DNA of 64,000 nucleotides from Eutreptiella sp. 'Long Island Sound 2002'. Taxonomy: Eukaryota; Protista; Euglenida. Location of the stretch: NCBI GenBank assembly GCA_964036045.1, contig OZ038378.1, forward strand, positions 11,594,001-11,658,000, read 5' to 3'. The position numbers and the translations under genes were made by a program. The notes below the pieces were generated by a model. The model was not told the origin of the DNA. It saw only the letters and a program-made list of their open reading frames with translations, and searched no databases. Shown here piece by piece: positions 1 to 47,021 of this stretch (the stretch's first letter is position 1; each line of letters opens with the position of its first letter).

Positions 1-1249
1 TTGCAAAAGTGGCATTATTGTGGAAAAAAAATTTTACTTGCCATCACAGTAACAAAAATTACCCAACCTTACCGCCAAAAAAATTTACACATCCTTACCG
101 CAAAAAAAACTGTACACCAACGTTGTTTTTTTTTTTTTGTTCAAAGCACTCTGCAACCTTACCGCAAAAAAAAATTACGCGCATGGAGGGTTTTTTTGTA
201 CACAGTTGCATGGCTCCTCTCAACAGGGCAGCTCTGATGGAGACTCAGGCCACGCTGTCCCATTGGCCTGTGTTGGTATGTAAACAATCTGTGGCATCTT
301 TTAGGTGCTCTGATGTTCAACCCTTGAATGAAATGCCATACAGTTTTGGCAAATGGATTATGTGAGGAGGAATGTGCTTTACGAAATCAACATGTATAAG
401 TGGCTTTACAGCTTGCCTCACATGTGAAAGGTGGCCAATCCCAGCTGCTGACACAGAATTTTGTAGCACACACACACATACGTGCGCAACACACAACAGG
501 CAGCCGGCAGCCAGCAACAATCTCAGTCGTGCAACGTGTACTGTCCATCTCCCATGTGCACGTGGGGCTGCCTCATTTGTAGGTGTTTTACTGAGTGCCC
601 CAATGTTCCAGATTGGCGAGCGTATCTGGTCAAAGCCCATTCAGTGGCTTGGGCAGACAATTTTGCCATCATTTGTCTATGATACCCTGGTGGCCAGGCC
701 CTGGTGTTATCTACTGCACCTCCTGGACTCTGCTGCTTCAATGGCATTCCATCATGTATGCCTCACAACCGATCTTCTTTCCCTAAAGATGCCACTCCAC
801 CTTCCCCAAACATGCTCAGACACAGCATGCCCCGGAGGGGGGACTAGCTCGGACCAACAGCGCGTGGAGGGAATCAGGCTGGAAATCAGGGTATTGGAAG
901 AGAGACTGGCCAAACCAGTCATGGGGAGTGGGTTCGCTGGGGACAGGGCGCTGGGAGGAGGACGAGAGGCTGCGGAAAGGTTACTGGGAATGAAGGGCAT
1001 CAGGACAGGAATGGCGAGGGGCACAAAGTGTTGCCACAGTGCGCTGCAGTCACTCCAACCATTGCTTTATTGTCTTGTGGTTCATCAAATGTTGGAGTTA
1101 GACGTCAGAGTAAGGGTCCCCTTCAAGGCAGTGTGCAAGTTTCATCTGCTGCCAAGCAGATGCAAGTGCAGTCCAAACCCCACCAAAAATGCGATGGCAC
1201 TCAAGACTTCGCAGCATCAAACCGACGATGACAAAGCCCATATGCCATC

Positions 1250-1420
1250 CATAAATTGTATGGGCCCATTTGGAGTGCACATGTGCGGGCGGTCACTGCA
1301 GAACCACCCATACCGGTCAGGTGGCATGAGATGTCCCCCGTGGCAGTACTGCCCTCAAACAGCCACATGTCCACAAAGCCCCCCCCTTCAAGAGGTAACT
1401 GGCGTTACAGCCACAGACGT
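1250..1420 (-). pseudogene. Possible degenerate tyrosine recombinase C-terminus (DIRS/Ngaro/Crypton-like relic)
   Basis: With frameshifts the minus strand reads roughly T-x-x-x-L-R-x-G-S-T-A-T ... G-W ... S-A-V-T-A-R-T-C-A-L-Q. This resembles the HSLRRGGA...GRW.S...Y motifs of element-borne YRs. Heavily decayed. Confidence 0.25.
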
Positions 1421-3399
1421 CCAGTAAACTCCGGTGGGCACAAAGAGGCACATCCGGTGGCGTCTGGCAGAAAGGCGGGCTGCCTCCGGCAACATCAGCT
1501 GGGAGGGGCAGGGATGGGTTGGTCGCAATGGGAACAGATAGGTACAGGTGTGGGCAGGGCTGGGCAGGGATGGGTTGTTATGGTGGTGTGTAGCTGCCGA
1601 CCTCATATCTTTTCAACCTCATCAATGGTGTTTACTCCCAGAAGCAAAGAATGGGTGGCTCTGGGAGGGGGGTGATGCAGTATCACCCATGGAAACGGGG
1701 CAGGGCTGGCAGCCTTGGAGGATGGATGTTGCCAAAAAGCGCAGGAAAGCGCCATGAAACAGATGAACCCCAGCATCCACGTACCGCCGCCCCGCCAAAG
1801 GGTGCAACTGCAGTGTCCTGGCAATTCTGAACTGCAGTTTGCCACATGCTAAGAGCAAGTCTAGTCGCAGTTGTCCAATGTCTGTGAGGGGGCGTCTTTC
1901 TGTGGAACATGATTTGGTGAATTGCAGCCTGTGCCCCCAGTCAAACATGTTGCAGAAATGTGCAGATTTCTTCACTTTGGCAGTCTCTTCCACACTTCTC
2001 TGGACCAAAATTTCTAAAATCTTATTATTGTTGTTCATGTTCATCTACCAATGTCTAAAATCTAAGGTTCTTGCTCACTTTGGTTCTGAAAAGTATGATC
2101 GAGCTGCATGCAGTGCCCCGGAGTCTGTCAGGACCCTATTTGTATTTGTTTCCCGCCTGTGGTGATTGGCGTCCCGTCTCGTGACTGCCGACTACTGCAC
2201 GTGACTGGCCAACCGCCGTTGTTGATTGGCCTGGCGCTAATGGTCACCTGTTGTGTTACCCGTCAAGTGTCCTCCCGTGTGTCATTTTTGGCTGAAGTGT
2301 GGCCTGGCTGTTTCTATTCTTTAGACGTTACGGAAGGACCTGCTGTGGGCCTGCTCCTTCTGCATCACGTTCTTCACCAGTTATTTTTTCTCATCTCTTG
2401 GTTCCAATGCATCTGTTTCGCCACAAACCTCCTCTTGGCCTAGATGGTGAAGCAAACAAGTGATTTTGGGGCAGTTGGAGGTTGAGGCTTTGTCCCTGTT
2501 TCAATGCATCTTCCGCCTTTTTTTTTTGGCACAATCATGTATTTTCAGAAAATCATGACAATCTTGCCTGATTGCGTGTTGGAGCGCCACTGTGTCAGCC
2601 TCGCCTCAGCAGTAATGTCAATTGATAGTTGGGTGAGGACTCCCAATGTTGGTGTCAAATTGTTCTACTAGGTGTCTGCCATGGTGCAGGTGCTGTGTGG
2701 ACCACGCAACATAGCACAGCATGTACACACTCCTGCACTCTGTTGCTTAGTGCCTTTTTTTTTTCCAAAAGGCGCTCAGATGACACCATGAAGTTGTGTG
2801 TACTGATCGGCGCGTTGGTAGGGGCCTGACAGCTCCGTGCAACCAGAGTAGGCTTTTGTCGAGAGATACTCCCCAGAAGTAGTGCGCAGTGCATGATAAA
2901 GTTTCTGCACAGTCACCCTCCAGATGGATGGGGTCATGGTGTTGATGATGGGCTCTTGTAGCTGGGATGCTGCCAGCAAGAGGGACCGTTGCTGTGCAGG
3001 GCGCATGCGGGGCAAATTTTCAGCCCTAAACACTCCTGACCGCCACTTGCAAACCATGTCGGGCTGAACATCCCTGCAATTGTTTAGCCACCCTTCCCAT
3101 TCCCTCTCAAAGACCAAGGAGTTTCAGTCCACCCATCCTTTTCACCATCCCCACCTAAATGCCAACCATCCAAGTCACAGGTTGCAAAGTTAAGCAAGCC
3201 AAAAAAAATACAATGTGAAATGGAAGTAGCGAAGTCTATTGAGATTTAGCTTGAGAAGGCAACAAAAGACGGGTGAAATGACCTGGTCCTGACCATGCCT
3301 CTCGACCCCAAAAAGACTTGCAGCGTTCATTGTTTACTCTAATTTCAGAGTGTCTGTCGCTGATTTTGTCACTCCCTCATATCAGCCGACAAACAATAC

Positions 3400-3680
3400 A
3401 ACAAGACTCCTAGCCGATGGCAAAGTGCTAGTTTGCACTAACTCTCAATACATGCTCCTAGGAGGGCAAGGGGCAGCCCTCAAGTGGTATGCCTATGGTT
3501 GGGTTGGCGAACATGGACTGGTTCAAAGTGCCTCTTTGGGAAGGAATCTTGGATGCATTTGATACCCTAGGATGGCTAGTACAATGGCTTAACGCCCCAG
3601 TGCATGTCCACATCTACAGCAATATTCAGGCGGACTCCCTAGCCAACCGGGGTAGATCATGCAGCCCTCTTTCTGCTACA
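3400..3680 (+). pseudogene. Frameshifted RNase H domain relic from a LINE
   Basis: LLADGKVLVCTNSQYMLLGGQGAALKWYAYGWVGEHGLV / PLWEGILDAFDTLGWLVQWLNAPVHVHIYSNIQADSLANRGR aligns by eye to the RNase H at 62100-62360 (LSFGKVAICTDSEYVFLGATGAARRWKLRGWTGSSGPVSNVPLWELLL...KVPSHVDILGNNEADRLAEQGR). One frameshift. Confidence 0.8.
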
Positions 3681-27529: not shown

Positions 27530-30230
27530 GGGATGTATTATCCCCCACCAACCGGAATACACGCCACCCCACATTCACCACGAAGCGCAGGCCATTCACT
27601 GACAACTCCAATTCCACCTCCTATTGTGTCTGCACCTCAGCGGAACAGTGGAAGACCCTGCCCCCCGACCCCGGACCCCAAAGACCAATCTCGAACGCGT
27701 CAACGTCAAAGGGCGCATCAACAACAACAAGACCCCGGCGACTTAGATCGGAGGAACATAGGGGTACAAGCCTCCTCCCTCTATGCGCTAATACCAAGCA
27801 ATGCAAAAGGCTTTGGACTAGCTTTAGGGGGCACGAGGGTAGGCAGGTGGATCCCCACAAAACATGGCACCACCCGCGAGGAAAGGGCAAACCCCTTGCT
27901 GCGGGTGCAAGGCCCAAGAAAATTGGCCTAGCACTCGCCGAGCATGCTTCTTGGACAGCGGTAAAAGAGCCACCCTCAACCACAGGCCCACCAATGTAGC
28001 CCACTGACCCTCCAGCATAAAAATGCCCTGTTGGGGGCCAAACAACACGACGCTTTCCCAACCAAATGATGGAGGGTACCGGTTCTAAAATGACGTTTGG
28101 GCTGATGATTGCGCCTCCTGCAGACAGCAGGGAACATAATTGAGACGCGGCACCACCTACTTTGCAAACCCATAGCCGACTACCAAAAAGTCCTCCAAAC
28201 AATGCCGCCTGAACACGGAAACAAACCCTCGGTTTTCCACCAAAAAGCCCAGGACCACCTGGCGAATGGCTTGAGAATACTTCCAACCAAAAGTAAGACG
28301 TTCAAGGGATGGGAAATGCCATCGAACATGGACCAAAAAAACTGGCGGAAATCCTCCGGCAAACAGAAGGACCAACAAGCATGTTTGAGGTCCACATGAC
28401 AACCCATCAAAGGGGCACCTGCAGGCGCCTCCATCCGAAGCCGACGTAAAGCATTCAAGAAAGGATCATTCAAGTGAGACTCTGCACTCGCGGAAGGCCA
28501 AAAAAACCACCATGCATCTGCAAAGGGTGGAGCTCGTTGAGGATGGCCAGGTCTTCAACGACCGGCAATGAAAATGATGCTGGCTTTTGGTTGTGTTGTT
28601 TGTTCAACTACACGAGATGAACTATCATGGAGGCCTTTTCCGAATTTTTTGGGGCAGGGAAGAGCCATCCATTCACGGGCAGGGCAGATTAGCAAAGCGC
28701 CAGAATGCCATCACAAATCAAAGCACACACCATAATTAAACCATCAAAAGATATCTCTTTGATGCCCGGCAACGCACGGCGCACCATGTGCAAAGTGGCA
28801 GTTGGGGCCACAGCATGCAAGGTGAAAAGTGGAATATCTATATTGCCGGTCGGCCCTATCCCTCTCAAGAATACGAGCGGATAAACCAATCAAAATCGGC
28901 TTGGGGGAGGTGGATTTGCGCAACATCATAACCCAAACCTCAAGAGACAAGGCATCTAGGGTGGACACGACGGCTAGGTCAAAATCATGCACTCCCAGGT
29001 CCTCAGCTATCTCTCCACCTTGTAAGATCGACAACCTCAAGCAGGACCGCACCAATCCCACATCCGAGAGCGGGACCCCTAAGCCAACAGAGACGTGATC
29101 CAACCACCGTCGGATCCCGTTGGCCGTTGGATCTAGAAGGTGGTCCAGAGTGTCCCCTGCTGAACCTTTGACCGCCTGGACAGCAGACCTTGGCCCCATT
29201 GCAACATTCTAGATACGTCCCCGAAACTTGGAGGCCGCTTATGTGGACTGTGAACCACTAATTGTGGCAACCTTGGACTCTATGGATCCTGTGACTGCAA
29301 CATTCCCCAGATCTTGTTGAGTTGGGGGGCTGTGGGTGGGGGCCAGGTTGCAGGGCCCGGAGTTGAATGTCCTTTGTAGCAATGGTGACACCACATGCGT
29401 GGGGGCTTCTTACCGGGCTCCTGCGGCGGCTGCATCCATCCTCACTGTCATCATCACCCCTTTGCAACGGATGGCGGTCAGGTTGGATGTTCGTCGGCCA
29501 AGAAGAGATCCAACAACGATCTGGGCTAGAGATCCCCAGTATCCATGGCGATCAACTTGAACCATGGACTCGCCAGCCACGGAAGTGACGATATTTTGTG
29601 GAAGACAAACTCGTCATGGGTGGCAACGTACAAATTTGCCATGGACACAAGGCCCACGGGCCCCAAGAGCAGAGGTTCCTACAGGGCAGCCCCCGAAAGC
29701 GGAGGTAAGGTTATAGGGTGGATACAGCCGCTTCGATGGGAGCACCTCTGCTAAATCGCCAGTGGCTACACCGGGAGACCTCGCCTACTCTAGACTGCAC
29801 GCACTACAAACAATGGGTAGGATTGGGCCATTTTTGTCGCCACCATCCTTTCATTCGCGAGTCTGGCCTTACCTCCCCCCCTTACCTCCGAACTTCCCCT
29901 ACTCCCCCCCTAACCCCCCCGCCCCCCAAACCTCCTAGGTAAAGGGGGGCAACTTCGTGCAATATATGTCGAGGCCATATCTATCGAAACCTCCTCCAAA
30001 ACCATATATCCTACCAGCCAGTCAACGGATTCTTCCATGGACCCAACAAAAGAGGCGGTCTCCGATCCAAGCATCTCCTCCACCCTCCATCCCGCGCAAC
30101 TCCTTCGTCGGTGCCATCTACTTGCGTGTCCACACCCACACACCCGCATCCGCCTTAAACTTGGCTTGGATGTCCCCAGTCAAGTAGCTGTCGAAGGACA
30201 AAGATCTGTCCATCCGTCCCGTTACTGATC
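27530..30230 (+). mobile_element. Old decayed LINE (RT remnants)
   Basis: Ordered remnants: DLRNIITQTSRDKASRVD (KAPGxD-like), NLEAAYVD (DLEKAYD-like), GARLQGPELNVL (GxPQG-like), WMFVGQ. Many stops. Confidence 0.4.
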
Positions 30231-36663: not shown

Positions 36664-37675
36664 TTGTAATGACCAAAACGGAGGTGCAAAAGAGAAAAAC
36701 TCATACTCCAGAAAGGATGCTCGAGAGCACAGGAACACCCACGGAGGGGCAGCACGGCAACAGCCGGACCCAAACGCAGCCCGGGAGAGGAACTGGGTGG
36801 CGTGACAAAAACCCGCACCATAAATGGTAGAGAGCACAAGCTGCTGCTCCGTCGTACATACGGTGCGGATGCGGGATAGGGACAAGTGCGAAATGACGGG
36901 ATTTCGCACATTGTTCGGCGGCCGGACAGTACCTGTCCCCGTTCCTGTGCCCGTCCCTGAGAGGGGGTACGGGGCTTGAAGAGTGATGGGGCCCGCTCCG
37001 GGGCCCTGGACAGGCACCCGTCCCATTGCTTCCACAACCCCTCCAACCGTCCACCAACCTTCACAATCCTTGACAACCCTCCACAACCTATTCAGATGTG
37101 GGCACTTTCTTTTGCGATAGCATATTGCAATGTGGACACTTCATTTTGTCAAGGGGACAATTCATATTGCGCTGTGGATGCTTCCACAACCCATCATCTT
37201 TCCCCCTTTTGTGGTGCCCAAAATAGGCTGATCTCTGTCTCCTGCTCAGTTCACCGACGCGCTGTTGGATGCTTCGCTGGCTCCTCAAAGACCGCCCTGT
37301 TTACGATTTTACAGGATTGCTTTGCAACATTTGTTTCTTTTCCCACACAATTTCGACAACTGTACAGAGTTTCGGTGCAGTGTCTCGTAGCGTGCCGTTG
37401 CCTTTCAATAGATCAGCATGCAAAACTGGACAGAATCGCGCACTTTAGTTTGCACTTGCACGCGGCAACTCGTTTTTTCCAAACCAACGTCTCAACGAGT
37501 GTACCATTCGTAGATGGATGCCAAAACAGCTTGAAGCCATTTTGGGCTCTGCTGAAAACACGCTGGGTCTTTGCAACAGAATCTGCCTGTCACCGCCATT
37601 TTGTTGATGTCTGCCACGTAAAGTGTCCTTCCACAGTTGCAAACGTGCACGTGAATACAGCAGTGTAGCACAAAC

Positions 37676-37783
37676 CTCCATTCGGAGCGTCAAACCATTG
37701 CACTGTACCGTCCCACGCTTCACTCTCGAACTGGATGGATCCGTCTGGATTCGTGCCGATCAGTTTGTGGGGGTGTCCCCTTC
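37676..37783 (-). CDS. Bicupin gene, exon 5
   Basis: ACAG|GA...GGAG|GT, 108 bp, phase 1 at both ends. Reads (G)RGHPHKLIGTNPDGSIQFESEAWDGTVQWFDAPNG(G). Not in the ORF track. Confidence 0.88.
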
Positions 37784-38164
37784 CTGTGGCGATATGTACG
37801 GAGGTAGGACGGCCAGAGTTCGCGCGGACCGATACCTATGTGACCTGGTGTGGTCTGGGGTAACAGGTCCGGCGGGGTTTGGGGAGCCTTGGAAAATGCA
37901 GTGGAGTGAAGGTGCAGAATTAGGGCTCAGAGGTGCTGGTCACGCCAAGGACCAGAATCTCCCGGCCGGGGTGGCACATTTGTTCCCGGTAATGATCCCA
38001 GGGGAAAATGGGAAACCAGGACGAATGGGAGAAAATGGGGGGGAAATGGGAAACCCGGGGGGGAATGGGGGAAAAGGGGGAAAGGGGGGGGGGATTGGGG
38101 TTAATGATGGTCATTTTGGAGATAATGTGCCATATATCGCACGAAGTCGCCCCCCCCTACCTTG

Positions 38165-38275
38165 GAGGTAGGGGGGGGGTAGGGGGGGGAGGTAGGGGGG
38201 GGAAGGTAGGGGGGGGAAGGTAGGGGGGGGAGGTAGGGGGGGGAGGTAGGGGGGGGGTAGGGGGGGGGCGACTCC
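38165..38275 (+). repeat. G-rich (GGGGGGGAGGTA)n subterminal tract, left end of the KDZ element
   Basis: Runs of 6-8 G separated by AGGTA or TA. Confidence 0.9.
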
Positions 38276-38609
38276 GCGGGTCCTAGGACGCCAACTACCC
38301 CCCCCCCCAGGGGCCTCCGGCCGACAGTTAGTTGTCAAAGGTATGGGCCCAAGGAGCCAACGGGCGCCGAAGGCGCCCAATGGGGTTATGTAGCCACCTT
38401 GCCCACTTGTGGGCCCTTTTCTGATTCTGCCCCCCGCTCTGAGGCGGTGGGGATCCCCTAGGCGGCAGGGGTTATATAGCCACCTTGCCCCATCCTTGCC
38501 CACAAGTGGGCCAATTCTGATTCTGCCTCCCCGCTCTATAGCGGTGGCTATTTGGGCGTCTGGCCGTACTAGAGACCCATACTTTGATATACTAGGGGCC
38601 CCTAGGGGC

Positions 38610-39060
38610 ATCATGGTGACCCCCGGCGTAGGTTTTGACTTGTGATTTTGTTCCCTTTGTTGGGGACCCCCGAGAATGCAGGGGTGATGTAGCATTTCCG
38701 CCCTCTTTTGGGCCCCAACCGTCCGGTGCTATTGAGGAAACCGGGACAATCTTTGAATCCACGCTTTGTTGCGTGGTGCATCAGGGTTACCCCCGGCGTA
38801 GGTTTTGACTTCTGATTTTGTTCCCTCTGTTGGGGACCCCCGAGAATGCAGGGGTGATGTAGCATTTCCGCCCTCTTTTGGGCCCCAACCGTCCGGTGCT
38901 ATTGAGGAAATCGGGACAATATTTGAATCCACGCTTTGTTGCGTGGAGCATCATGGTGACCCCTGGCATAGGTTTTGACTTCTGATTTTGTTCCCTTTGT
39001 TGGGGACCCCCGAGAATGCAGGGGTGATGTAGCATTTCCGCCCTCTTTTGGGCCCCAACC
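38610..39060 (+). repeat. 170-bp tandem repeat (about 2.6 copies) in the left subterminal region of the KDZ element
   Basis: GGTTTTGACT at 38631, 38801 and 38971. Confidence 0.92.
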
Positions 39061-39461
39061 ATCATGGTGAGATGTAGCCAATTCGCCGAGACCGGCACTT
39101 GAAGATCCCTGCCTCGAGCTTTCATACCCCGGCTCGAGGAGGAGGCAATCAGGGGCTTGAAGATCCCTGCCTCGAGCTTTTCCCCGGCTCGAGAAGGAGG
39201 CATTCAGGGGCTTTCTTTCTTCCTTTCCTTTCTCATAGGCGTAGGCGTAGGCAGGGGTGACGTAGCCACCTTGCCCACAAGTGGGCCAATTCTGATTGTT
39301 GCGTCTGTTGCGTCGCGATTTTCCGCGTTTTCCGCGGGGTTACAAGTGAGACTGGTTTACAGGGTTACAAGTGCAAGTTACAAGGCAAGGGCATCATGCA
39401 GCCTGTGCATTTGTGACCACGGCTTTTCCATCACCCATTCTACAGGATATTGTGCATCACC

Positions 39462-42400
39462 ATGAATTACGATTCAGTCGAGGACGTGGTTGCAACATAT
39501 GTTGCTCGCTATGCAGAGCACTATAGGCAATTTTGGTCGCATCCTTGGCCCACAAGGCCCATCAACGCACTGTTGGTAGACTTGCAGACCGTGGGAATCA
39601 AGGCAACTTCGATGCATGTGTTCCGCGCCCTCAATCGCTTGCGTCAATGTGGCGTTTTGGAGTTGACATACCAGCCGCCGATGTATTTGTTGCCGTTCTG
39701 TGATGCCTGCCATGCGTGCGGTGGGAATCTGGAAGCAGCCCATGTTACCACTCTGGAAGTATTGGGGAATGCTGAGGTGCTCATTCCGCGTACGATGTAA
39801 TCCGCTCTGCCAATGTTGTAAGTACCATATTGCGTTCCCGTTCTTCCTTAGGGGAGGCCGAAGGATATTCAACTTGTGAAGGGCACCTGTACTTCGTGCG
39901 ACATTCACTATACCTACGATGGTTTCACCGTTGGTGGTAAATCCTATCGACTCACCGAGGAACGGCCATACATGATGGTCACGAATAGGTGTGTGCAACG
40001 TCCGTTTTTGCGTCCATTTCCAAGATGTGTGCCTACAGTGCACAACATCTGTGCAATATTTAGGTCCGTCTTGCGCAAGCGCGACATCGATGACACGGAA
40101 GTGAGGTTGACGCTGCAACATGCTAGCTTCCACACACAAGGTCTTGTGTTGGGGATACCACCAAAGATTTTGAAGAAGGGTTTGTTCTTGCGTTGGGCCA
40201 TGCGCTATCACCGAGAGCAGATGGTGCAGGACGTCATGCCCGATACGGATCTCTGGGATGACTCACTCTTTGAGATGTTGAACACCCGCATCCGTAACAA
40301 TGGAATGCCTTCACGGCACCATAGGTGTGTGTTTACTACAGTGGTGTTACCCTTCGGTTTGGTGAGTGGACAACTACCATCTCTTGTTTGCGTCATGTGT
40401 AGGTGCACAACAGCGGGGCCCCAGCATGTGAGGCACATGAGTTTCAAGAAGGCCGGGGACGACAAAGTGGCATACCTTACTGCAGCTCTCCAGAGGTTTG
40501 AGGAGGTGGTGATTCTGGACGGGCACGAGAAGGTTTGCCACCGTGTGTGTCAACATCAACGTGGTGAGCGGGGACTACATCCAACAACAGGCTTGAACAT
40601 CCCTTTGCAATGCTCCCAATGGCCTGACAAGACTACTAGTTCTGCCTACTGCCGTGAGCATAAACCTGTGGATCAACCGGTCGTTCCCAAACTTTTGGAT
40701 GAGAGCGATGATGAAGAAGATGAGGTGATTGCCCTCCGTACGCGGGCCAAGCAACAACAACAGCCGACCAAGCCCAAGACTACAAGCACAGTGAGCGACG
40801 AGGGTTGCACGAAGACCTTCGTTGTGCACCCGGGCAAGACGTCGGGTCTGCTAGCAACTGCTCGGCCTTGCAACTGCATTATTGAGTTGTCGGAATTGAT
40901 ACAGCCGGAGTCTACGCACGATGTCCTCAACTGTGTCCACGCTCTGCGGGAGGATGGTGTCGTCATTCATTACGCTGGGTACGACAACGGTTGTCACTGC
41001 GACCCATCCGTTCGCAAGCACAAGGTTTCGACTTTGGAGGACGTGACTTGGTTTGTGGACAGGTATACTTGCAATCCTCATACCTTGCCATAACAAGGAT
41101 ACATGCAATGCATGGATGAAGCTTCTGCTTCTGTTGCTCATAGGTTCCACGAGGTGAACCACAAGTGTACGAAGTACAATGCAGACGACATCCCTGCCTT
41201 GGAAGGCGTCAACAGTGAGGCGTGCGAGCAGCTCTTCGTATGGTTGTCGCGCTTCAAGTACATTGCACCTACCATGAATGATGTCCGGTTCTTCTTCCTG
41301 CTTTGGAACGTTTGTGAGGCCCACAATCGCTACCTGGGGGCAGGGGGCGACCCGGCTGGCATCTTGAAGCCTTCTGCACCAACTATGGCACGTGAGGAGC
41401 AGCTGGAGGATCCCCTTACTTGGATTATTTTGATCGTTGAGCCGACAGTTGCCGTTAGCTTGTCGAACTTCCTTCTGCGGCAATCGGCGGCCTTGCATTG
41501 GGCAATGACGTATGCGTCGCCTTCCCCCAACACGCTCCCGGCTAACAACCCCGTCGCACACTTGGCACGCCCGGTTACGTCAACGGCATCGGGTTCGTCT
41601 GGTTACGTGGCCATGGGCTCCGTCTCGCGGCGCATTGGGTCCAAGCGCGCGCAGCCCCCAAGTCCAGCGTCAGCAACATCCTCACCGGCCCTAAAGCGAG
41701 TGGCCCTTGATCAGCCCGATGTGGACGGTATCGCGAAGCAGCTGTTTGCCACTGATTTGAAGGGGAAGGACGATCCTTTGTCCCCATCCAGTGCCGAATC
41801 TACGTCTTCCTGTGGTGCTCCTGTTGGTGCTGCAGGTGTGTGGCGGTAACCTAACGCCTTGGAAGCACTTCTCCGTTCCATGTTGCCATCATGTTACTCT
41901 TATCGTTGTAGGTGATCCAGCCGCGGAAAAAGAGGCCACTGTTGACGAAGGTGAATTGCACGGTGATGACGCGATACCGGATAAGGCAGCAGCTCCTGCA
42001 CCCCTTCCTCCGGGCCGTGCCCCTAAGGCCGTGGCACAGAAGAAGGATAGCGAAGGTTCCTGCTTCGTCGTGTTCCTGCTCCGTAGGTTCGCTGACACTT
42101 TACGCATATCACGTTTTCTTTCGTCACATGGGTATGTTTCGTCTTTCTAGTCCCCGACAAGTTGAGGCACCATGAAGTGGTAATGTCGGAGGGCGTCAGG
42201 AATCAGTTGAGGACCCTTAGTATTGAAGTTGGGGGTTTCAAGGAGTGGGATGCGGACAAAGAGGCGCAGGACTTCCAAAAGTTGCGGGAGCCACCCTCCG
42301 GTTTGTCTGTGGCGAACTACGACAAAATTGTGACCTTCTTCTTGTTGCGCTTGCGTGGCAACGAACCCATCGCGGTCCGCCCGGTGATGAAGGGCATCTT

Positions 42401-42776
42401 CGGCAAGGGGCAAGTGAAGTGCCCAAGTACAGTGGGTGTGTACAACTACACATGCGTTGCGAACGGGCCTTTTGTTGGTCGCAATACATCTCTTCTTTAC
42501 TTTCGTCCGTTTGTCCTTGCAACAGGTAAGGCCGTGCTGCTGCGCTTTCAGTATGAGGGGATGTTGCTGCTGCTGACGAAGAAGTCCCCCATGGCACCGG
42601 TGCCTTCGCTGTGGATCGTGTTGTTGCCTGTGCGTGGCCCAACCCCCATTATGCAGCAGTATGGTGTGGAGCAAGTCGACTGGAATAAGCGCGTGCAGCT
42701 GGTGCCGCCAAAAAGTTTCTTGCTGCCGAACAAGACCGTGGAGAAGCAGCAGCCGAAGGTTGGTGATCCGGAGTAG
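39462..42776 (+). CDS. Intron-containing KDZ transposase with N-terminal CxC5-like cysteine cluster and a C-terminal extension (944-995 aa depending on two in-frame introns)
   Basis: Exons 39462-39776, 39852-41062 (probable in-frame introns at 39989-40063 and 40325-40402), 41144-41835, 41912-42055 and 42151-42776, all GT-AG and phase-consistent. Motifs: CDACHACGGNL...CTSCDIHY; VILDGHEK; GLLATARPCNCII...ES; YDNGCH; VDR|FHEVNHKC; GVNSEACEQLFVWL; FFFLL...HN. Confidence 0.85.
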
Positions 42777-43269
42777 TCGGTGAGCGGTGTAAGTACGTGC
42801 TGTCTACATCACCGTCTACTTGCATTCATCGCTCCCATGGTGCCATTGGCACATGGTGCCCATTGGTTACACACTGTATTTAAGTTTTCACCTGTGTCCT
42901 CGGTTGTTTGAGTCCATCATATATGGCACCTTTTGCGTGGGCCGCTATGCCGTGGTATTGTGTTCCTACTGCGGTGGCTTGTCGCTTGTCTTCTGCATTC
43001 TTTGGTGTGCCGCCATGCTTGGCACCCTGCGTCCATACTCGTTCTTCTGTTCATAGTCACGTGTTGACTTTGGCGCTGCATACGGTGCAGCCACACATCG
43101 GACTCGAGTGGTAGCAATCACTCACCATGGGTCGCAGTTCGTGTTTTGATTTCGTGGCTGTTGTGCTTGCATTGGTCTCCTCTTTGCAGATGGGGTGGAG
43201 GTGTTTGGGCGAGAAGGGAGCCGTAGCAAAGAACGGTTAGGTGGTGCGTAGGAGTGAAGTTCTTTAAAG

Positions 43270-44235
43270 GGCCACAGGCAAGGCGGTACGCACAGAAGGC
43301 GGGGCGAACACAAGGCGGAACACACAAAAGGCGGTCTGTGGCCACCGCAGGAGTCATGTTAGTTAAGGGGCCTCAAGCAAGGCGGTGCACACACAAGGCG
43401 GAACACACAAAAGGCGGTCTGTAGCCACCGCAGGAGTCTTGTTATTTAAGGGGCCACAGGCAAGGCGGTGCACACACAAGGCGGTGCACACACAAGGCGG
43501 AACACACAAAAGGCGGTCTGTGGCCACCGCAGGAGTCTTGTTATTTAAGGGGCCACAGGCAAGGCGGTGCACACACAAGGCGGAACACACAAAAGGCGGC
43601 CTGTGGCCACCGCAGGAGTCTTGTTATTTAAGGGGCCACAGGCAAGGCGGTGCACACACAAGGCGGTGCACACACAACGCGGTAAACACAAAAGGCGGTC
43701 TGTGGCCACCGCAGGAGTCATGTTAGTTAAGGGGCCTCAAGCAAGGCGGTGCACACACAAGGCGGAACACACAAAAGGCGGCCTGTGGCCACCGCAGGAG
43801 TCTTGTTATTTAAGGGGCCACAGGCAAGGCGGTGCACACACAAGGCGGTGCACACACAAGGCGGAACACACAAAAGGCGGTCTGTGGCCACCGCAGGAGT
43901 CTTGTTACTTAAGGGGCCACAAGCAAGGCGGTGCACACACAAGGCGGAACACACAAAAGGCGGCCTGTGGCCACCGCAGGAGTCTTGTTATTTAAGGGGC
44001 CACAGGCAAGGCGGTGCACACACAAGGCGGTGCACACACAAGGCGGAACACACAAAAGGCGGTCTGTAGCCACCGCAGGAGTCTTGTTATTTAAGGGGCC
44101 ACAGGCAAGGCGGTGCACACACAAGGCGGTGCACACACAAGGCGGAACACACAAAAGGCGGTCTGTGGCCACCGCAGGAGTCTTGTTATTTAAGGGGCCA
44201 CAGGCAAGGCGGTGCACACACAAGGCTGTGCAGCC
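43270..44235 (+). repeat. Higher-order tandem array (83/99-bp units, 182-bp dimer) in the right subterminal region of the KDZ element
   Basis: GCCACCGCAGGAG at 43341, 43424, 43523, 43606, 43705, 43788, 43887, 43970, 44069 and 44168. Confidence 0.95.
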
Positions 44236-44259
44236 AAAAGGCGGTCTACCAACGCAAGG

Positions 44260-44598
44260 GTCCGGGTGGGGTGGGGGGCGGGGGTTGCTCGGGAAGGGCG
44301 GGGGGGGTGGGGGGTTGGTGGTGGTGGGGGGGGGGGGCAGGTAGGAGTAGCAACGTAGGGGGGGGGAGGTAGGGGGGGGGAGACGAGGTGGGGGGGGGAG
44401 GTAGGGAGGGGAAGAGGTAAGGGGGGGGAGGTAGGGGGGGGGAAGGTAGGGGGGGGAGGTAGGGGGGGGGAGGTAGGGGGGGGAGGTAGGGGGGGGGTAG
44501 GGGGGGGGGTTGGGGGGGGTTGGGGGGGGTAGGGGGGGGGGTTTGGGGGGGGTAGGGGGGGGTAGGGGGGGTAGGGGGGGGGGAGGTAGGGGGGGGCG
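44260..44598 (+). repeat. G-rich (GGGGGGGAGGTA)n subterminal tract, right end of the KDZ element
   Basis: More than 25 G-runs; the tract merges into the right inverted repeat. Confidence 0.9.
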
Positions 44599-47021
44599 AC
44601 TTCGTGCATACTATCAATGTGCAAAGTGGCGGTGTTTTGTGTCACTTAGGGTAGGTTTGTAGGCTGGAAATGCGGCAGGTGATGCAGCTGTTGTGCACAA
44701 TTCTCACCATCATGTCCCGTTGTGTGTTGCGTTGTTGAAGCATAATTGACATGAAATTGAGTGGCATACTTTTCTGAGACACCCGTCTATGGCCATTTTG
44801 AAGATAATGTGCAAGTGGCGGTGTTTTTTTGTCAATTAAAGAGGGTTACGGGTTGAAAACGCGGCAGTTGATGTGGTTGTTGTGCAGAATTCTCACCATC
44901 ATGTTCCATTGCTTGTTGTTTTGCCGACTGAAGCATGATTGACATGTGACACATTCATCTATGGTCATTTTGGAGATAATGTGCAAAGTGGCGGTATTGT
45001 TTTCAAAAATCCCAGGACAAATGAGAATCATGTATGCTGTCCCTGGCCCATAAAAATGTGATGAAAACCCTCAAAAGTGTGTACATTGTCCATCGTCCCA
45101 TGGAGAGCAATCTAATTGTGACAAAAGACAAAAGGGACAACTGTGCAGGAGAAGACGATGGTGGCACACTAACCTCGGTGCAATGCACTACCCACCTGAA
45201 ATGACCACATACGATTGCCAACCCATGCAATATTTCCCCTCCATTTCCCCCCAGTTTCCAGTTTCCCCTACCCCCCCCCCCCAGTTTGCCCCATTCTTCC
45301 TCCCCTGTGTCCCTCATTCCGTCAGCCTACCCCCTACATTAGCAGCCAAAAGTGGCATCTTTGGACCTTTCTCATCGAATTTCCATTTTGCCACAAAAAT
45401 AAAAGAAAATTCTCATTCTTTGCCCCGTTTCTCCCCATTTTTCCTACATTGGCAGATTTTTGGGACAAGCTTCCGGTAACATTCTGGAAACGGGAGAATG
45501 AGGGTCCTGTCACACTATCTTGATCAGCCATCGAATTCGGTGCTGTGCACTTGCCCTTTGCTGGTACCTTCATTCAAGGTCTGGACATCTGGTGTCAGGG
45601 GGTTGAAAGGAGCTGCCCGATGGCAGTGGGCTTGTCAACCTGTGGCGGCTGGCAGCCAACGGCCATGTGCTGGTGGTGCTTAATCGACAAAATGGACGGT
45701 AACCGCCAGCACTTCGGTCGACTGACAATGCTTGGCCAGTAACTGCCAGCAGCGGACCTGTACCACCACCCTGGGGCCTGTGTGGTCCCTAACAGGAAAA
45801 GAAAAAGAGCGGTGGACATCCTGCCCGCAGTCCACCAGTCAGCCACCTTGACCCTATCCCATCCTTCATGACCCCTGCACAACGCTCAGAGCTCATGGCC
45901 CTCCAAGCTCATGGTCCACCATTCGTGCCTGACAATCCTCAGCAGTCCTCCACAATCCTTCACAAACTGTCACATCCGTCCTCAGGACGGGGCCTTGTTT
46001 GAAAAAACTAGCTCTGCCTTCTGAGGACACCAGCAACTGGAAGATTCAGGCTCAAGAATTGGTTGATGGGCTAAAAAATCCGACACTTCCATTGGTTGTG
46101 GGAGGGACATGCTTGGGTACAAAACAAAAAGAAACCTAACTAAATACCCAATGCCAAATATTACCTGCATACTGAGGCGGTCAGCCCTTGAATCTCAACT
46201 TGTGGTTTCAACTGCTGCCAAATGCTGCCTGTAATTGCAACATTTTGAATTGCATTGCAAAACAGCACTCCCTCCTCCTCTTTTCCTATGTGCCTGTGAC
46301 GTGTTCCCCTCCTTGTGTTCTCGTTCCTGCGGGATTGTGACATACGCATGGCACTGGTCCACTTCTATTGAGGTTGTGGGTTCGCACCCCAACTCTAGGC
46401 CATCCATGCTGTCCAAACATAACCGCTACCAAATGGCAGGACCCTGGGCCGCAAAGCTGCTGAGGTCTGGTTGCACGACCAGCAGGATATAAAAACAACT
46501 TGTTGCCAAACCCATCGCAACAGGACTAAACCTGGCCATTTCCATCATGACCGTGACCAACAGGGCAAGGGCATGAGGTCACTGAACAAATTGATTTGTG
46601 GCATGCATCGTTGTTCCCCAGCCCTAAGCTGGTTGGGTTTGCTGCCTTACAAATTGGTCCTGAAAGGGACTGTGTGCAACACCCGCGGCGTAAGCAGGAG
46701 GTTCTCTGAGGTCGAAAAAACTTCCGGCTTTCTCGCGGGCATAGCACGACCCATAAAACTGCACGTCTCTTTCGCCAGTCCACACGCAGCACAGACCTCA
46801 AGCAACAACAGCAGGGCGCACAAAAAACAAAGACGCCAGTTGTACCAAACAGTCTTTATGGAACACACACACATCCTCCCCCACAGACCTCGGAGCGGCA
46901 CCAAAACGACATCCAGCCCCCAACCGGCAGTGCTCGCGCCCAGAAACAGAAAGAGTGCAATGTTGAAAGGGCAGTCGGCCTCGCGTCTGGCACGGCAGGT
47001 CGTCAGTGCACACACACATAC

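Follow-up and report, generated by a model that had tools for sequence, protein, structure and literature searches.

A complete DNA transposon, probably of the KDZ group, from a young family in a probable euglenid genome

Here, we report a complete DNA transposon of 6,485 base pairs (bp) at positions 38131-44615 of a 64,000-nucleotide (nt) stretch of assembly GCA_964036045.1 (Eutreptiella sp. 'Long Island Sound 2002'; contig OZ038378.1, positions 11,594,001 to 11,658,000, forward strand), referred to below as the window. The element is very probably an autonomous cut-and-paste transposon of the KDZ (Kyakuja-Dileera-Zisupton) group, belonging to a young family represented by dozens of copies in the genome of a probable euglenid. 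The analysis establishes its ends, its target duplications, copies in unrelated flanks, open reading frames, purifying selection separating the subfamilies, and homology with KDZ proteins. An earlier annotation made from the letters of the window (the sequence-only reading) had proposed a recent KDZ element at this place, and its claims are taken up where the results bear on them.

An inverted-repeat search found a perfect core of terminal inverted repeat (TIR) near each end (24 bp, 38139-38162 and 44584-44607, 100% complementary); matches to this 24-mer numbered 0 in 100 shuffled windows, with a chance expectation of 0. Outside the core, each side carries an 8-base tip, and the element is bordered by a target site duplication (TSD), AATGTGC, at 38124-38130 and 44616-44622. 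The perfect repeat and the duplication had both been described in the sequence-only reading and were recovered as described. Joining the flanks gives a 32-mer, GGTCATTTTGGAGATAATGTGCAAAGTGGCGG, which occurs uninterrupted at 44963-44994, 340 bp from the element. This had been read as an empty-site copy; the uninterrupted sequence is indeed there, but it lies in a neighboring, paralogous unit of a tandem repeat of the host DNA and is not an allele. The insertion sits in the first unit of that repeat (unit length, ~172-189 bp; units at 38107 plus 44623, 44789, and 44961), and the look-alike belongs to the third, so it fixes the boundaries at 38131-44615 plus one 7-mer and is uninformative on presence/absence polymorphism. 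The window alone was also compatible with a 3-bp duplication (TGC) and a longer, CACTA-like right end finishing in ATG; this was ruled out by the other copies described below, in which ATACTATC invariably forms the right end and a 7-mer matching the left flank comes directly after it.

Further copies were located through a reading frame of 405 amino acids (aa) within the element (39876-41090), which led to a cluster of 31 near-identical proteins; the 405-aa protein of the window copy itself has no exact match on record. Besides the window copy, 11 copies (designated by L numbers) were examined, comprising ten loci of a single public assembly (ENA ERZ25074135) and a contig from Logan. Both ends were present in 8 of the 11, which with the window makes nine two-ended copies. 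In all nine, similarity begins with CATATATCGCACGAAGTCGCC and ends with GGCGACTTCGTGCATACTATC, save for point changes and the loss of 2 bp in one copy; the shared ends are 5'-CATATATC...ATACTATC-3', and the flanks are unrelated between copies. Seven of the nine have a TSD of 7 bp (with a single mismatch in two of them), one has a TSD of 8 bp, and one has none (Table 1). The TSD of the family is 7 bp, occasionally 8, and a target consensus is not evident. The tips do not pair perfectly with each other, the reverse complement of the right tip ATACTATC being GATAGTAT, unlike the left tip CATATATC. Left-tip variants were CATATATT in L006, TATATATC in L011, and a loss of 2 bp in L004. Because other copies carry the same mismatched tips, the asymmetry is a constant property of the family and not decay of the window copy; derivation of the right tip from GATATATG by decay was likewise rejected, the tip being identical in seven other copies.

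Identity among most copies was 97-99.8% over 3.4 kilobases (kb), and the family is young, with dozens of copies. Private differences between young copies were evenly spread over codon positions and introns, as expected of copies decaying neutrally after insertion. On these points the sequence-only reading fared well. Its 7-bp TSD holds in seven of the nine two-ended copies, counting the two with a mismatch; its roughly eight imperfect terminal bases outside the TIR core turned out to be fixed across copies; and its description of the element as recent agrees with the identity values and with a spliced 946-aa frame that is open in six of nine copies. It had also suggested collecting other copies and tabulating their TSDs and terminal bases, and the eight additional two-ended copies share the ends of the window element.

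On the + strand of the element, the long reading frames all lie in one phase and are separated by GT..AG segments of 75-89 nt. Taken as six introns, these segments give a predicted transposase of 946 aa in seven exons (Table 1). All six GT..AG pairs were retained in near-identical copies, and the spliced frame of 946 codons was interrupted by frameshifts or premature stops in three of nine copies. Relatives with uninterrupted frames skip the segments at intron 2 (P0004) and intron 3 (P0004 and P0010) in a by-eye reading, and a computed alignment of the catalytic core showed the D-x-F/W-H motif running uninterrupted across the intron 4 site in P0010, P0037, P0038, P0041, and P0046. The C-terminal exon (42221-42776) matched the C terminus of P0010, an uninterrupted frame of 1069 aa from a sister family described below (E 2e-8). 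A shorter gene model ending at 42175 (intron 42087-42150) was rejected because the frame at 42162-42773 matches the P0010 C terminus and six copies keep the long frame open. For the last intron, the acceptor is placed at 42220 but could alternatively be 42199.

One of the 11 copies, L003 (5738-7690), belongs to an older subfamily and is 91% identical to the window element; neither of its ends was found, one of its intron acceptors is mutated (AG to AA), and it served as the outgroup in the selection test. Its divergence was 17.3% in intron 2 and 14.1% in intron 3, versus 6.8-9.6% for the exons that it covers fully. Compared with the consensus, L003 differed at 6.2, 4.2, and 13.1% of codon positions 1, 2, and 3, respectively, and at 11.6% of intron positions. 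This codon-position pattern, which fits the intron model, is that of purifying selection between subfamilies, as judged from sequence divergence. The family encodes an intact-looking predicted transposase and is probably autonomous; for annotation, it accounts for a set of intron-split "orphan" reading frames.

An exhaustive search with HMMER through 1.84 billion representative proteins yielded 45 relatives of the transposase. Four of these (P0037, P0038, P0041, and P0046) matched the query with whole-library E values of 2.6e-7 to 3.6e-4 and pass the Pfam KDZ model (PF18758) at 35.7-36.4 bits (cut-off, 26.6). P0041 and P0046 are also above the threshold of Pfam CxC5 (PF18718), a model passed by three relatives, and KDZ and CxC5 are the only Pfam families among the 26 aligned relatives. 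A profile of the four KDZ-positive relatives matched residues 271-521 of the spliced protein with 105.8 bits (E 2.8e-25, scaled to 1.8e9). The conserved blocks are collinear with those of the KDZ-positive relatives, namely DG.EK (D277), RPC.II...E...ES, YD..C (D432), VDRFH..H..C (D457), and N.E.CEQ, whose E486 is invariant in the alignment with relatives. The sequence-only reading had named five KDZ motifs; all were found in the spliced protein (Table 1) and all align with the KDZ-positive relatives, and its KDZ reading is substantiated through relatives above the Pfam threshold and the 105.8-bit match. The nearest ESM Atlas clusters were CxC5, CxC6, or KDZ, from basidiomycetes and rotifers. 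Near the N terminus, residues ~80-120 hold the pattern C-x2-C-x2-CGG ... C-x2-C. An AlphaFold2 model of residues 240-650 of the sister protein P0010 (predicted template modeling score, 0.66) had as its top structural matches exclusively integrase and transposase cores (retroviral integrase, ISCth4, and TnsB; Z 8.0-8.6); in the model, the first D falls within a strand, the second just past one, and a helix carries the E. The model agrees with an RNase H-like DDE enzyme and is not strong evidence by itself.

Several results weigh against this interpretation. The KDZ assignment is transitive, made through relatives and not directly: the four profile sequences were chosen because they match part of the query, the four reading-frame pieces of the window gave no Pfam match even at E<=1, and P0010, the closest full-length relative, reaches 13.5 bits on the KDZ model, below 26.6. 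The null result for PF18758 on the pieces is a weak negative because intron 4 splits the domain. Similarity of the N terminus to CxC5 was not significant, with ~0 bits for a local profile of the relatives' N termini, and the structural scores of the P0010 model are borderline, at a level commonly reached (Z ~8; Foldseek E >= 0.02). RNA contigs from three estuary metatranscriptomes, compared over 39250-43240, had a depth of 2-4x and ran unspliced through introns 2, 4, and 5; being unspliced and shallow, they lend neither splicing nor expression any support, and they may be carried-over DNA. Taking the sequence comparisons together, the predicted protein is a divergent KDZ-superfamily transposase.

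A genuine TIR transposon of another DDE superfamily (a hAT7-like or P-like group with 7-8-bp duplications, or an unnamed KDZ sister) that carries a few KDZ-like motifs would account for the absence of a direct Pfam KDZ match, the subthreshold P0010, and the mere 45 relatives in 1.84 billion representatives, and hAT7 also makes 7-bp duplications (PMC12730594). We consider this very unlikely, as the Pfam families of the relatives include neither hAT, P, nor any other transposase family, the KDZ-positive profile is collinear over 250 residues and every conserved block at 106 bits, and the Atlas neighbors are all CxC5, CxC6, or KDZ clusters. The gene model bears on a different explanation, in which the family is extinct and the copies are dead relics whose "introns" are stop-containing pseudogene damage. 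The stop-containing segments are bordered by GT..AG in every near-identical copy, are uniform in length (75-89 nt), are skipped by relatives with uninterrupted frames, and evolve like third codon positions; once they are removed, six independent copies have an open frame of 946 codons, identity reaches 99.8%, and five duplications are perfect. Against this stand the in-frame stops at 39798 and 41091, the damaged frames in three of nine copies, and the unspliced RNA contigs of very low depth, and on balance extinction seems unlikely. That the copies reflect segmental duplication or an assembly artifact instead of transposition is extremely improbable: although L005 has no duplication and the sister-family copy L013 lies in a rearranged, duplicated context, similarity ends at the same two bases in nine loci with unrelated flanks, the direct duplications are of eight different sequences, and a paralogous uninterrupted target is present.

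Under the favored reading of an autonomous KDZ transposon, a single gene with six GT-AG introns of 75-89 nt would be spliced to encode a transposase of ~946 aa. Its predicted parts are an N-terminal cysteine cluster, a KDZ-type RNase H-like catalytic core with VDRFH..H..C, and a conserved C-terminal region; D277, D432, and E486 are candidate acidic catalytic residues. The transposase would recognize the ends by the asymmetric 8-base tip, an 11-base core (GCACGAAGTCG), and the GGAGGTAGGGGGG units, putatively binding the DNA of the arrays, and would then excise the element. For reinsertion, the target would be cut with a stagger of 7 bases, in some cases 8, and repair would create the duplication. 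The family may be active today.

Among described KDZ elements, Zisupton and Dileera have 8-bp duplications and inverted repeats (PMC12730594), so the sequence-only reading was right about the TSD of Zisupton. Kyakuja of the Agaricomycotina (e.g., Kyakuja-1_LB of Laccaria bicolor) has 7-bp duplications, CA..TG termini, and no inverted repeats (PMC12730594), and the KDZ1-3 elements of Cryptococcus neoformans, which move experimentally, have duplications of 8 bp (KDZ1) or 4-8 bp (KDZ2 and KDZ3) (PMC12810828). KDZ elements have also been reported in Chlamydomonas (PMC8226300). The duplications of the window family fall within the published KDZ range of 4-8 bp (PMC12730594, PMC12810828), and given the published 7 bp of Kyakuja, KDZ elements with duplications of this length were already known and the contrast with Zisupton marks no new kind. 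By published description, the window family resembles Kyakuja in its KDZ-type transposase, 7-bp duplications, and 5' end starting CA, but it ends in ...ATACTATC (3' ...TC, not TG), has a perfect 24-bp inverted core, carries no TET/JBP gene, and has a probable euglenid and not a fungus as its host. With Zisupton and Dileera (fish Zisupton, Zisupton-1_PGr; Bohne et al. 2012, as cited in PMC12730594), again by published description, it shares a KDZ-type transposase, inverted repeats, target duplications, and a multikilobase autonomous form, whereas their duplications are 8 bp versus 7 bp in seven of nine copies here. The Cryptococcus elements are of similar scale (~9-11 kb versus 6.5 kb) with inverted repeats and a varying duplication length, but their inverted repeats are long (139-241 bp) and their proteins have a CxC1 domain (PMC12810828), while the window family has a short 24-bp core, G-rich arrays on the same strand, and relatives with CxC5. 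Basidiomycete and rotifer CxC5/CxC6 proteins without a recognized KDZ domain make up the nearest ESM Atlas clusters (score 0.91, by language-model features alone), and their catalytic part also escapes the Pfam KDZ model. An insert of 6.8 kb disrupting poMSH4 of Pleurotus ostreatus, with a 739-aa frame, is similar in size, but its authors linked it to Copia elements and not to a KDZ transposon (PMC7641404).

A literature search pairing KDZ or Zisupton with Euglen* found no report, and the present family extends KDZ transposons to a probable euglenid, a host group without an earlier description of them. It adds to the known KDZ group and founds no new one. It is also fully delimited: its ends are defined to the base, flanks are available for nine copies, the introns and exons are modeled, and several copies appear intact. 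Few KDZ families have been delimited so far. The clean 7-bp family beside a sister family with an apparent 8 bp in the same genome could help to tie duplication length to transposase sequence, and the Pfam KDZ model evidently misses the branch to which the window transposase belongs. We offer only tentatively the idea, which we rather doubt, that this is the first characterized member of a distinct, undescribed KDZ lineage in Euglenozoa, outside fungi, animals, and green algae. Such a lineage would be set apart by a catalytic domain that the Pfam KDZ model fails to detect (like the orphan CxC5/CxC6 proteins of basidiomycetes and rotifers), by fixed asymmetric tips, and by same-strand G-rich arrays at both ends that appear prone to form quadruplexes and through which the ends might differ in their part in transposition. 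In that case, the orphan CxC5/CxC6 proteins found elsewhere would be transposases of this lineage as well.

The positions of the parts of the element, the protein motifs, and the duplications of the other copies are collected in Table 1. The G-rich strand is the same (+) in the left and right subterminal arrays, so the arrays are direct and not inverted. In the left TIR arm, the C-rich half equals one inverted array unit and can pair with the first unit of the adjoining G-rich array, with which it could possibly form a hairpin.

Table 1. Features of the transposon and its target site (window positions unless stated otherwise), motifs of the spliced protein, and target duplications of the two-ended copies
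Feature	Position or sequence	Strand	Remark
TSD, left copy (AATGTGC)	38124..38130	.	Identical 7-mer adjoins right end; single copy in uninterrupted paralogous site
Left terminal 8 bases (CATATATC)	38131..38138	+	Outside perfect repeat core; same start in most copies with a left end
Left arm of 24-bp TIR (GCACGAAGTCGCCCCCCCCTACCT)	38139..38162	+	Perfect complement of right arm
Left subterminal array, ~8 units of 13-nt GGAGGTAGGGGGG	38164..38267	+ (G-rich)	Also in L001 and L002
5' noncoding repeat region	38300..39300	+
86-nt units	38382-38522		5' region
170-nt repeat, x2.7	38608-39060		5' region (repeats of 85/170 nt)
55-nt repeat, x2.1	39098-39213		5' region
48-nt motif, GGGGTGACGTAGCCACCTTGCCCACAAGTGGGCCAATTCTGATT...	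39250-39297		5' region; hyperabundant genome-wide
Transposase gene	39462..42776	+	946 aa predicted after splicing; seven exons, six introns
Exons	39462-39776, 39852-39988, 40064-40324, 40403-41062, 41144-41835, 41912-42131, 42221-42776	+
Intron 1, 75 nt, GT..AG	39777..39851	+	In-frame stop at 39798
Intron 2, 75 nt, GT..AG	39989..40063	+	In frame, without stop; hidden in 405-aa frame
Intron 3, 78 nt, GT..AG	40325..40402	+	In frame, without stop; hidden in 405-aa frame
Intron 4, 81 nt, GT..AG	41063..41143	+	Removal joins VDR to FHEVNHKC
Intron 5, 76 nt, GT..AG	41836..41911	+
Intron 6, 89 nt	42132..42220	+	68 nt if acceptor is 42199; needed to join C-terminal region
3' noncoding tandem repeat, 182 nt (83+99), x5.3, with 16-nt subrepeats CAAGGCGGTGCACACA	43259..44244	+	Copy number differs among copies
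Right subterminal array, ~19 units of 14-nt GGGGGGGGGAGGTA	44330..44596	+ (G-rich)
Right arm of 24-bp TIR	44584..44607	-	Perfect complement of left arm
Right terminal 8 bases (ATACTATC)	44608..44615	+	Identical in L001, L002, L004-L007, and L011; ATACTATA in L008
TSD, right copy (AATGTGC)	44616..44622	.	Repeats left 7-mer
Uninterrupted paralogous target site	44963..44994	+	Third, partial unit of host tandem repeat
Solo left end of related subfamily, CATATATTGCACGAAGTTGCCCCCC then own G-rich array	29937..29968	-	Tip at 29968 is CATATATT
Motif ILDGHEK	Residue 275		Spliced protein
Motif RPCNCIIELSELIQPES	Residue 392		Spliced protein
Motif YDNGCH	Residue 431		Spliced protein
Motif VDRFHEVNHKC	Residue 456		Spliced protein
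Motif NSEACEQ	Residue 481		Spliced protein
Duplication, window	AATGTGC		7 bp, exact
Duplication, L002	GCAAACA		7 bp, exact
Duplication, L004	CATCCGC		7 bp, exact
Duplication, L007	CCCGGAA		7 bp, exact
Duplication, L008	GGTTCAC		7 bp, exact
Duplication, L006	GGGAC[G/A]A		7 bp, one mismatch
Duplication, L011	CCCC[A/G]TG		7 bp, one mismatch
Duplication, L001	GAAACCGC		8 bp
Duplication, L005	None

The 48-nt motif of the 5' region also occurs at 38382-38522, with diverged copies at 38681, 38851, and 39021. In sequencing run X6, word depth was 5.6e5 for 39250-39383 versus ~200 for the remaining element, and in the estuary RNA runs the motif reached a word depth of 550-3,400 versus 2-4. Elsewhere, it forms tandem arrays of ~85 nt, with 48 conserved nucleotides and 37 variable ones (joints). 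An Rfam search of 37500-45500, which includes the motif, gave no match.

The sister KDZ family, ~7.5 kb in length, was found in the same public assembly (L012:6929-14386 and L013:6949-13882). Its transposase, P0010, is encoded in a frame without introns and shares 39% identity with the query in the stretches that match. The ends of the family are CACTACTGTCG...CGACAGCACT; its subterminal arrays are inverted, with GTACGACACA as their 10-nt unit, and it also carries palindromes, for example GTACGACGCGTCGTAC. Its duplication is 8 bp (CTCCCAGC) in L012, the one informative copy, and is absent from the rearranged L013.

The 11.1-kb length of L001 suggested a second gene lost from the window copy. 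This was rejected, and the extra 3.65 kb is read as a nested insertion because it has its own CACATG...CATGTG ends and is absent from other copies. The nested element (L001:1878-5528) has a duplication of <=1 bp and a 717-aa reading frame for which Pfam gave no match. By Atlas features alone the frame looks RAG1/Transib-like, the nearest clusters bearing RNase H domains of RAG1 (score 0.91, with 158 features in common), which we take as a lead only.

For the solo left end with its tip at 29968 (Table 1), a search of the window found neither a partner end nor a transposase. The DNA that hosts the insertion looks like a further repeat structure: it has a G-rich array on the left (38001-38106) and a C-rich array on the right (45236-45441), the two are inverted relative to each other, and ATG(T)GGTCATTT comes next on the inner side of each. 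An older foldback-like element may therefore enclose both the KDZ element and the 172-189-bp tandem units.

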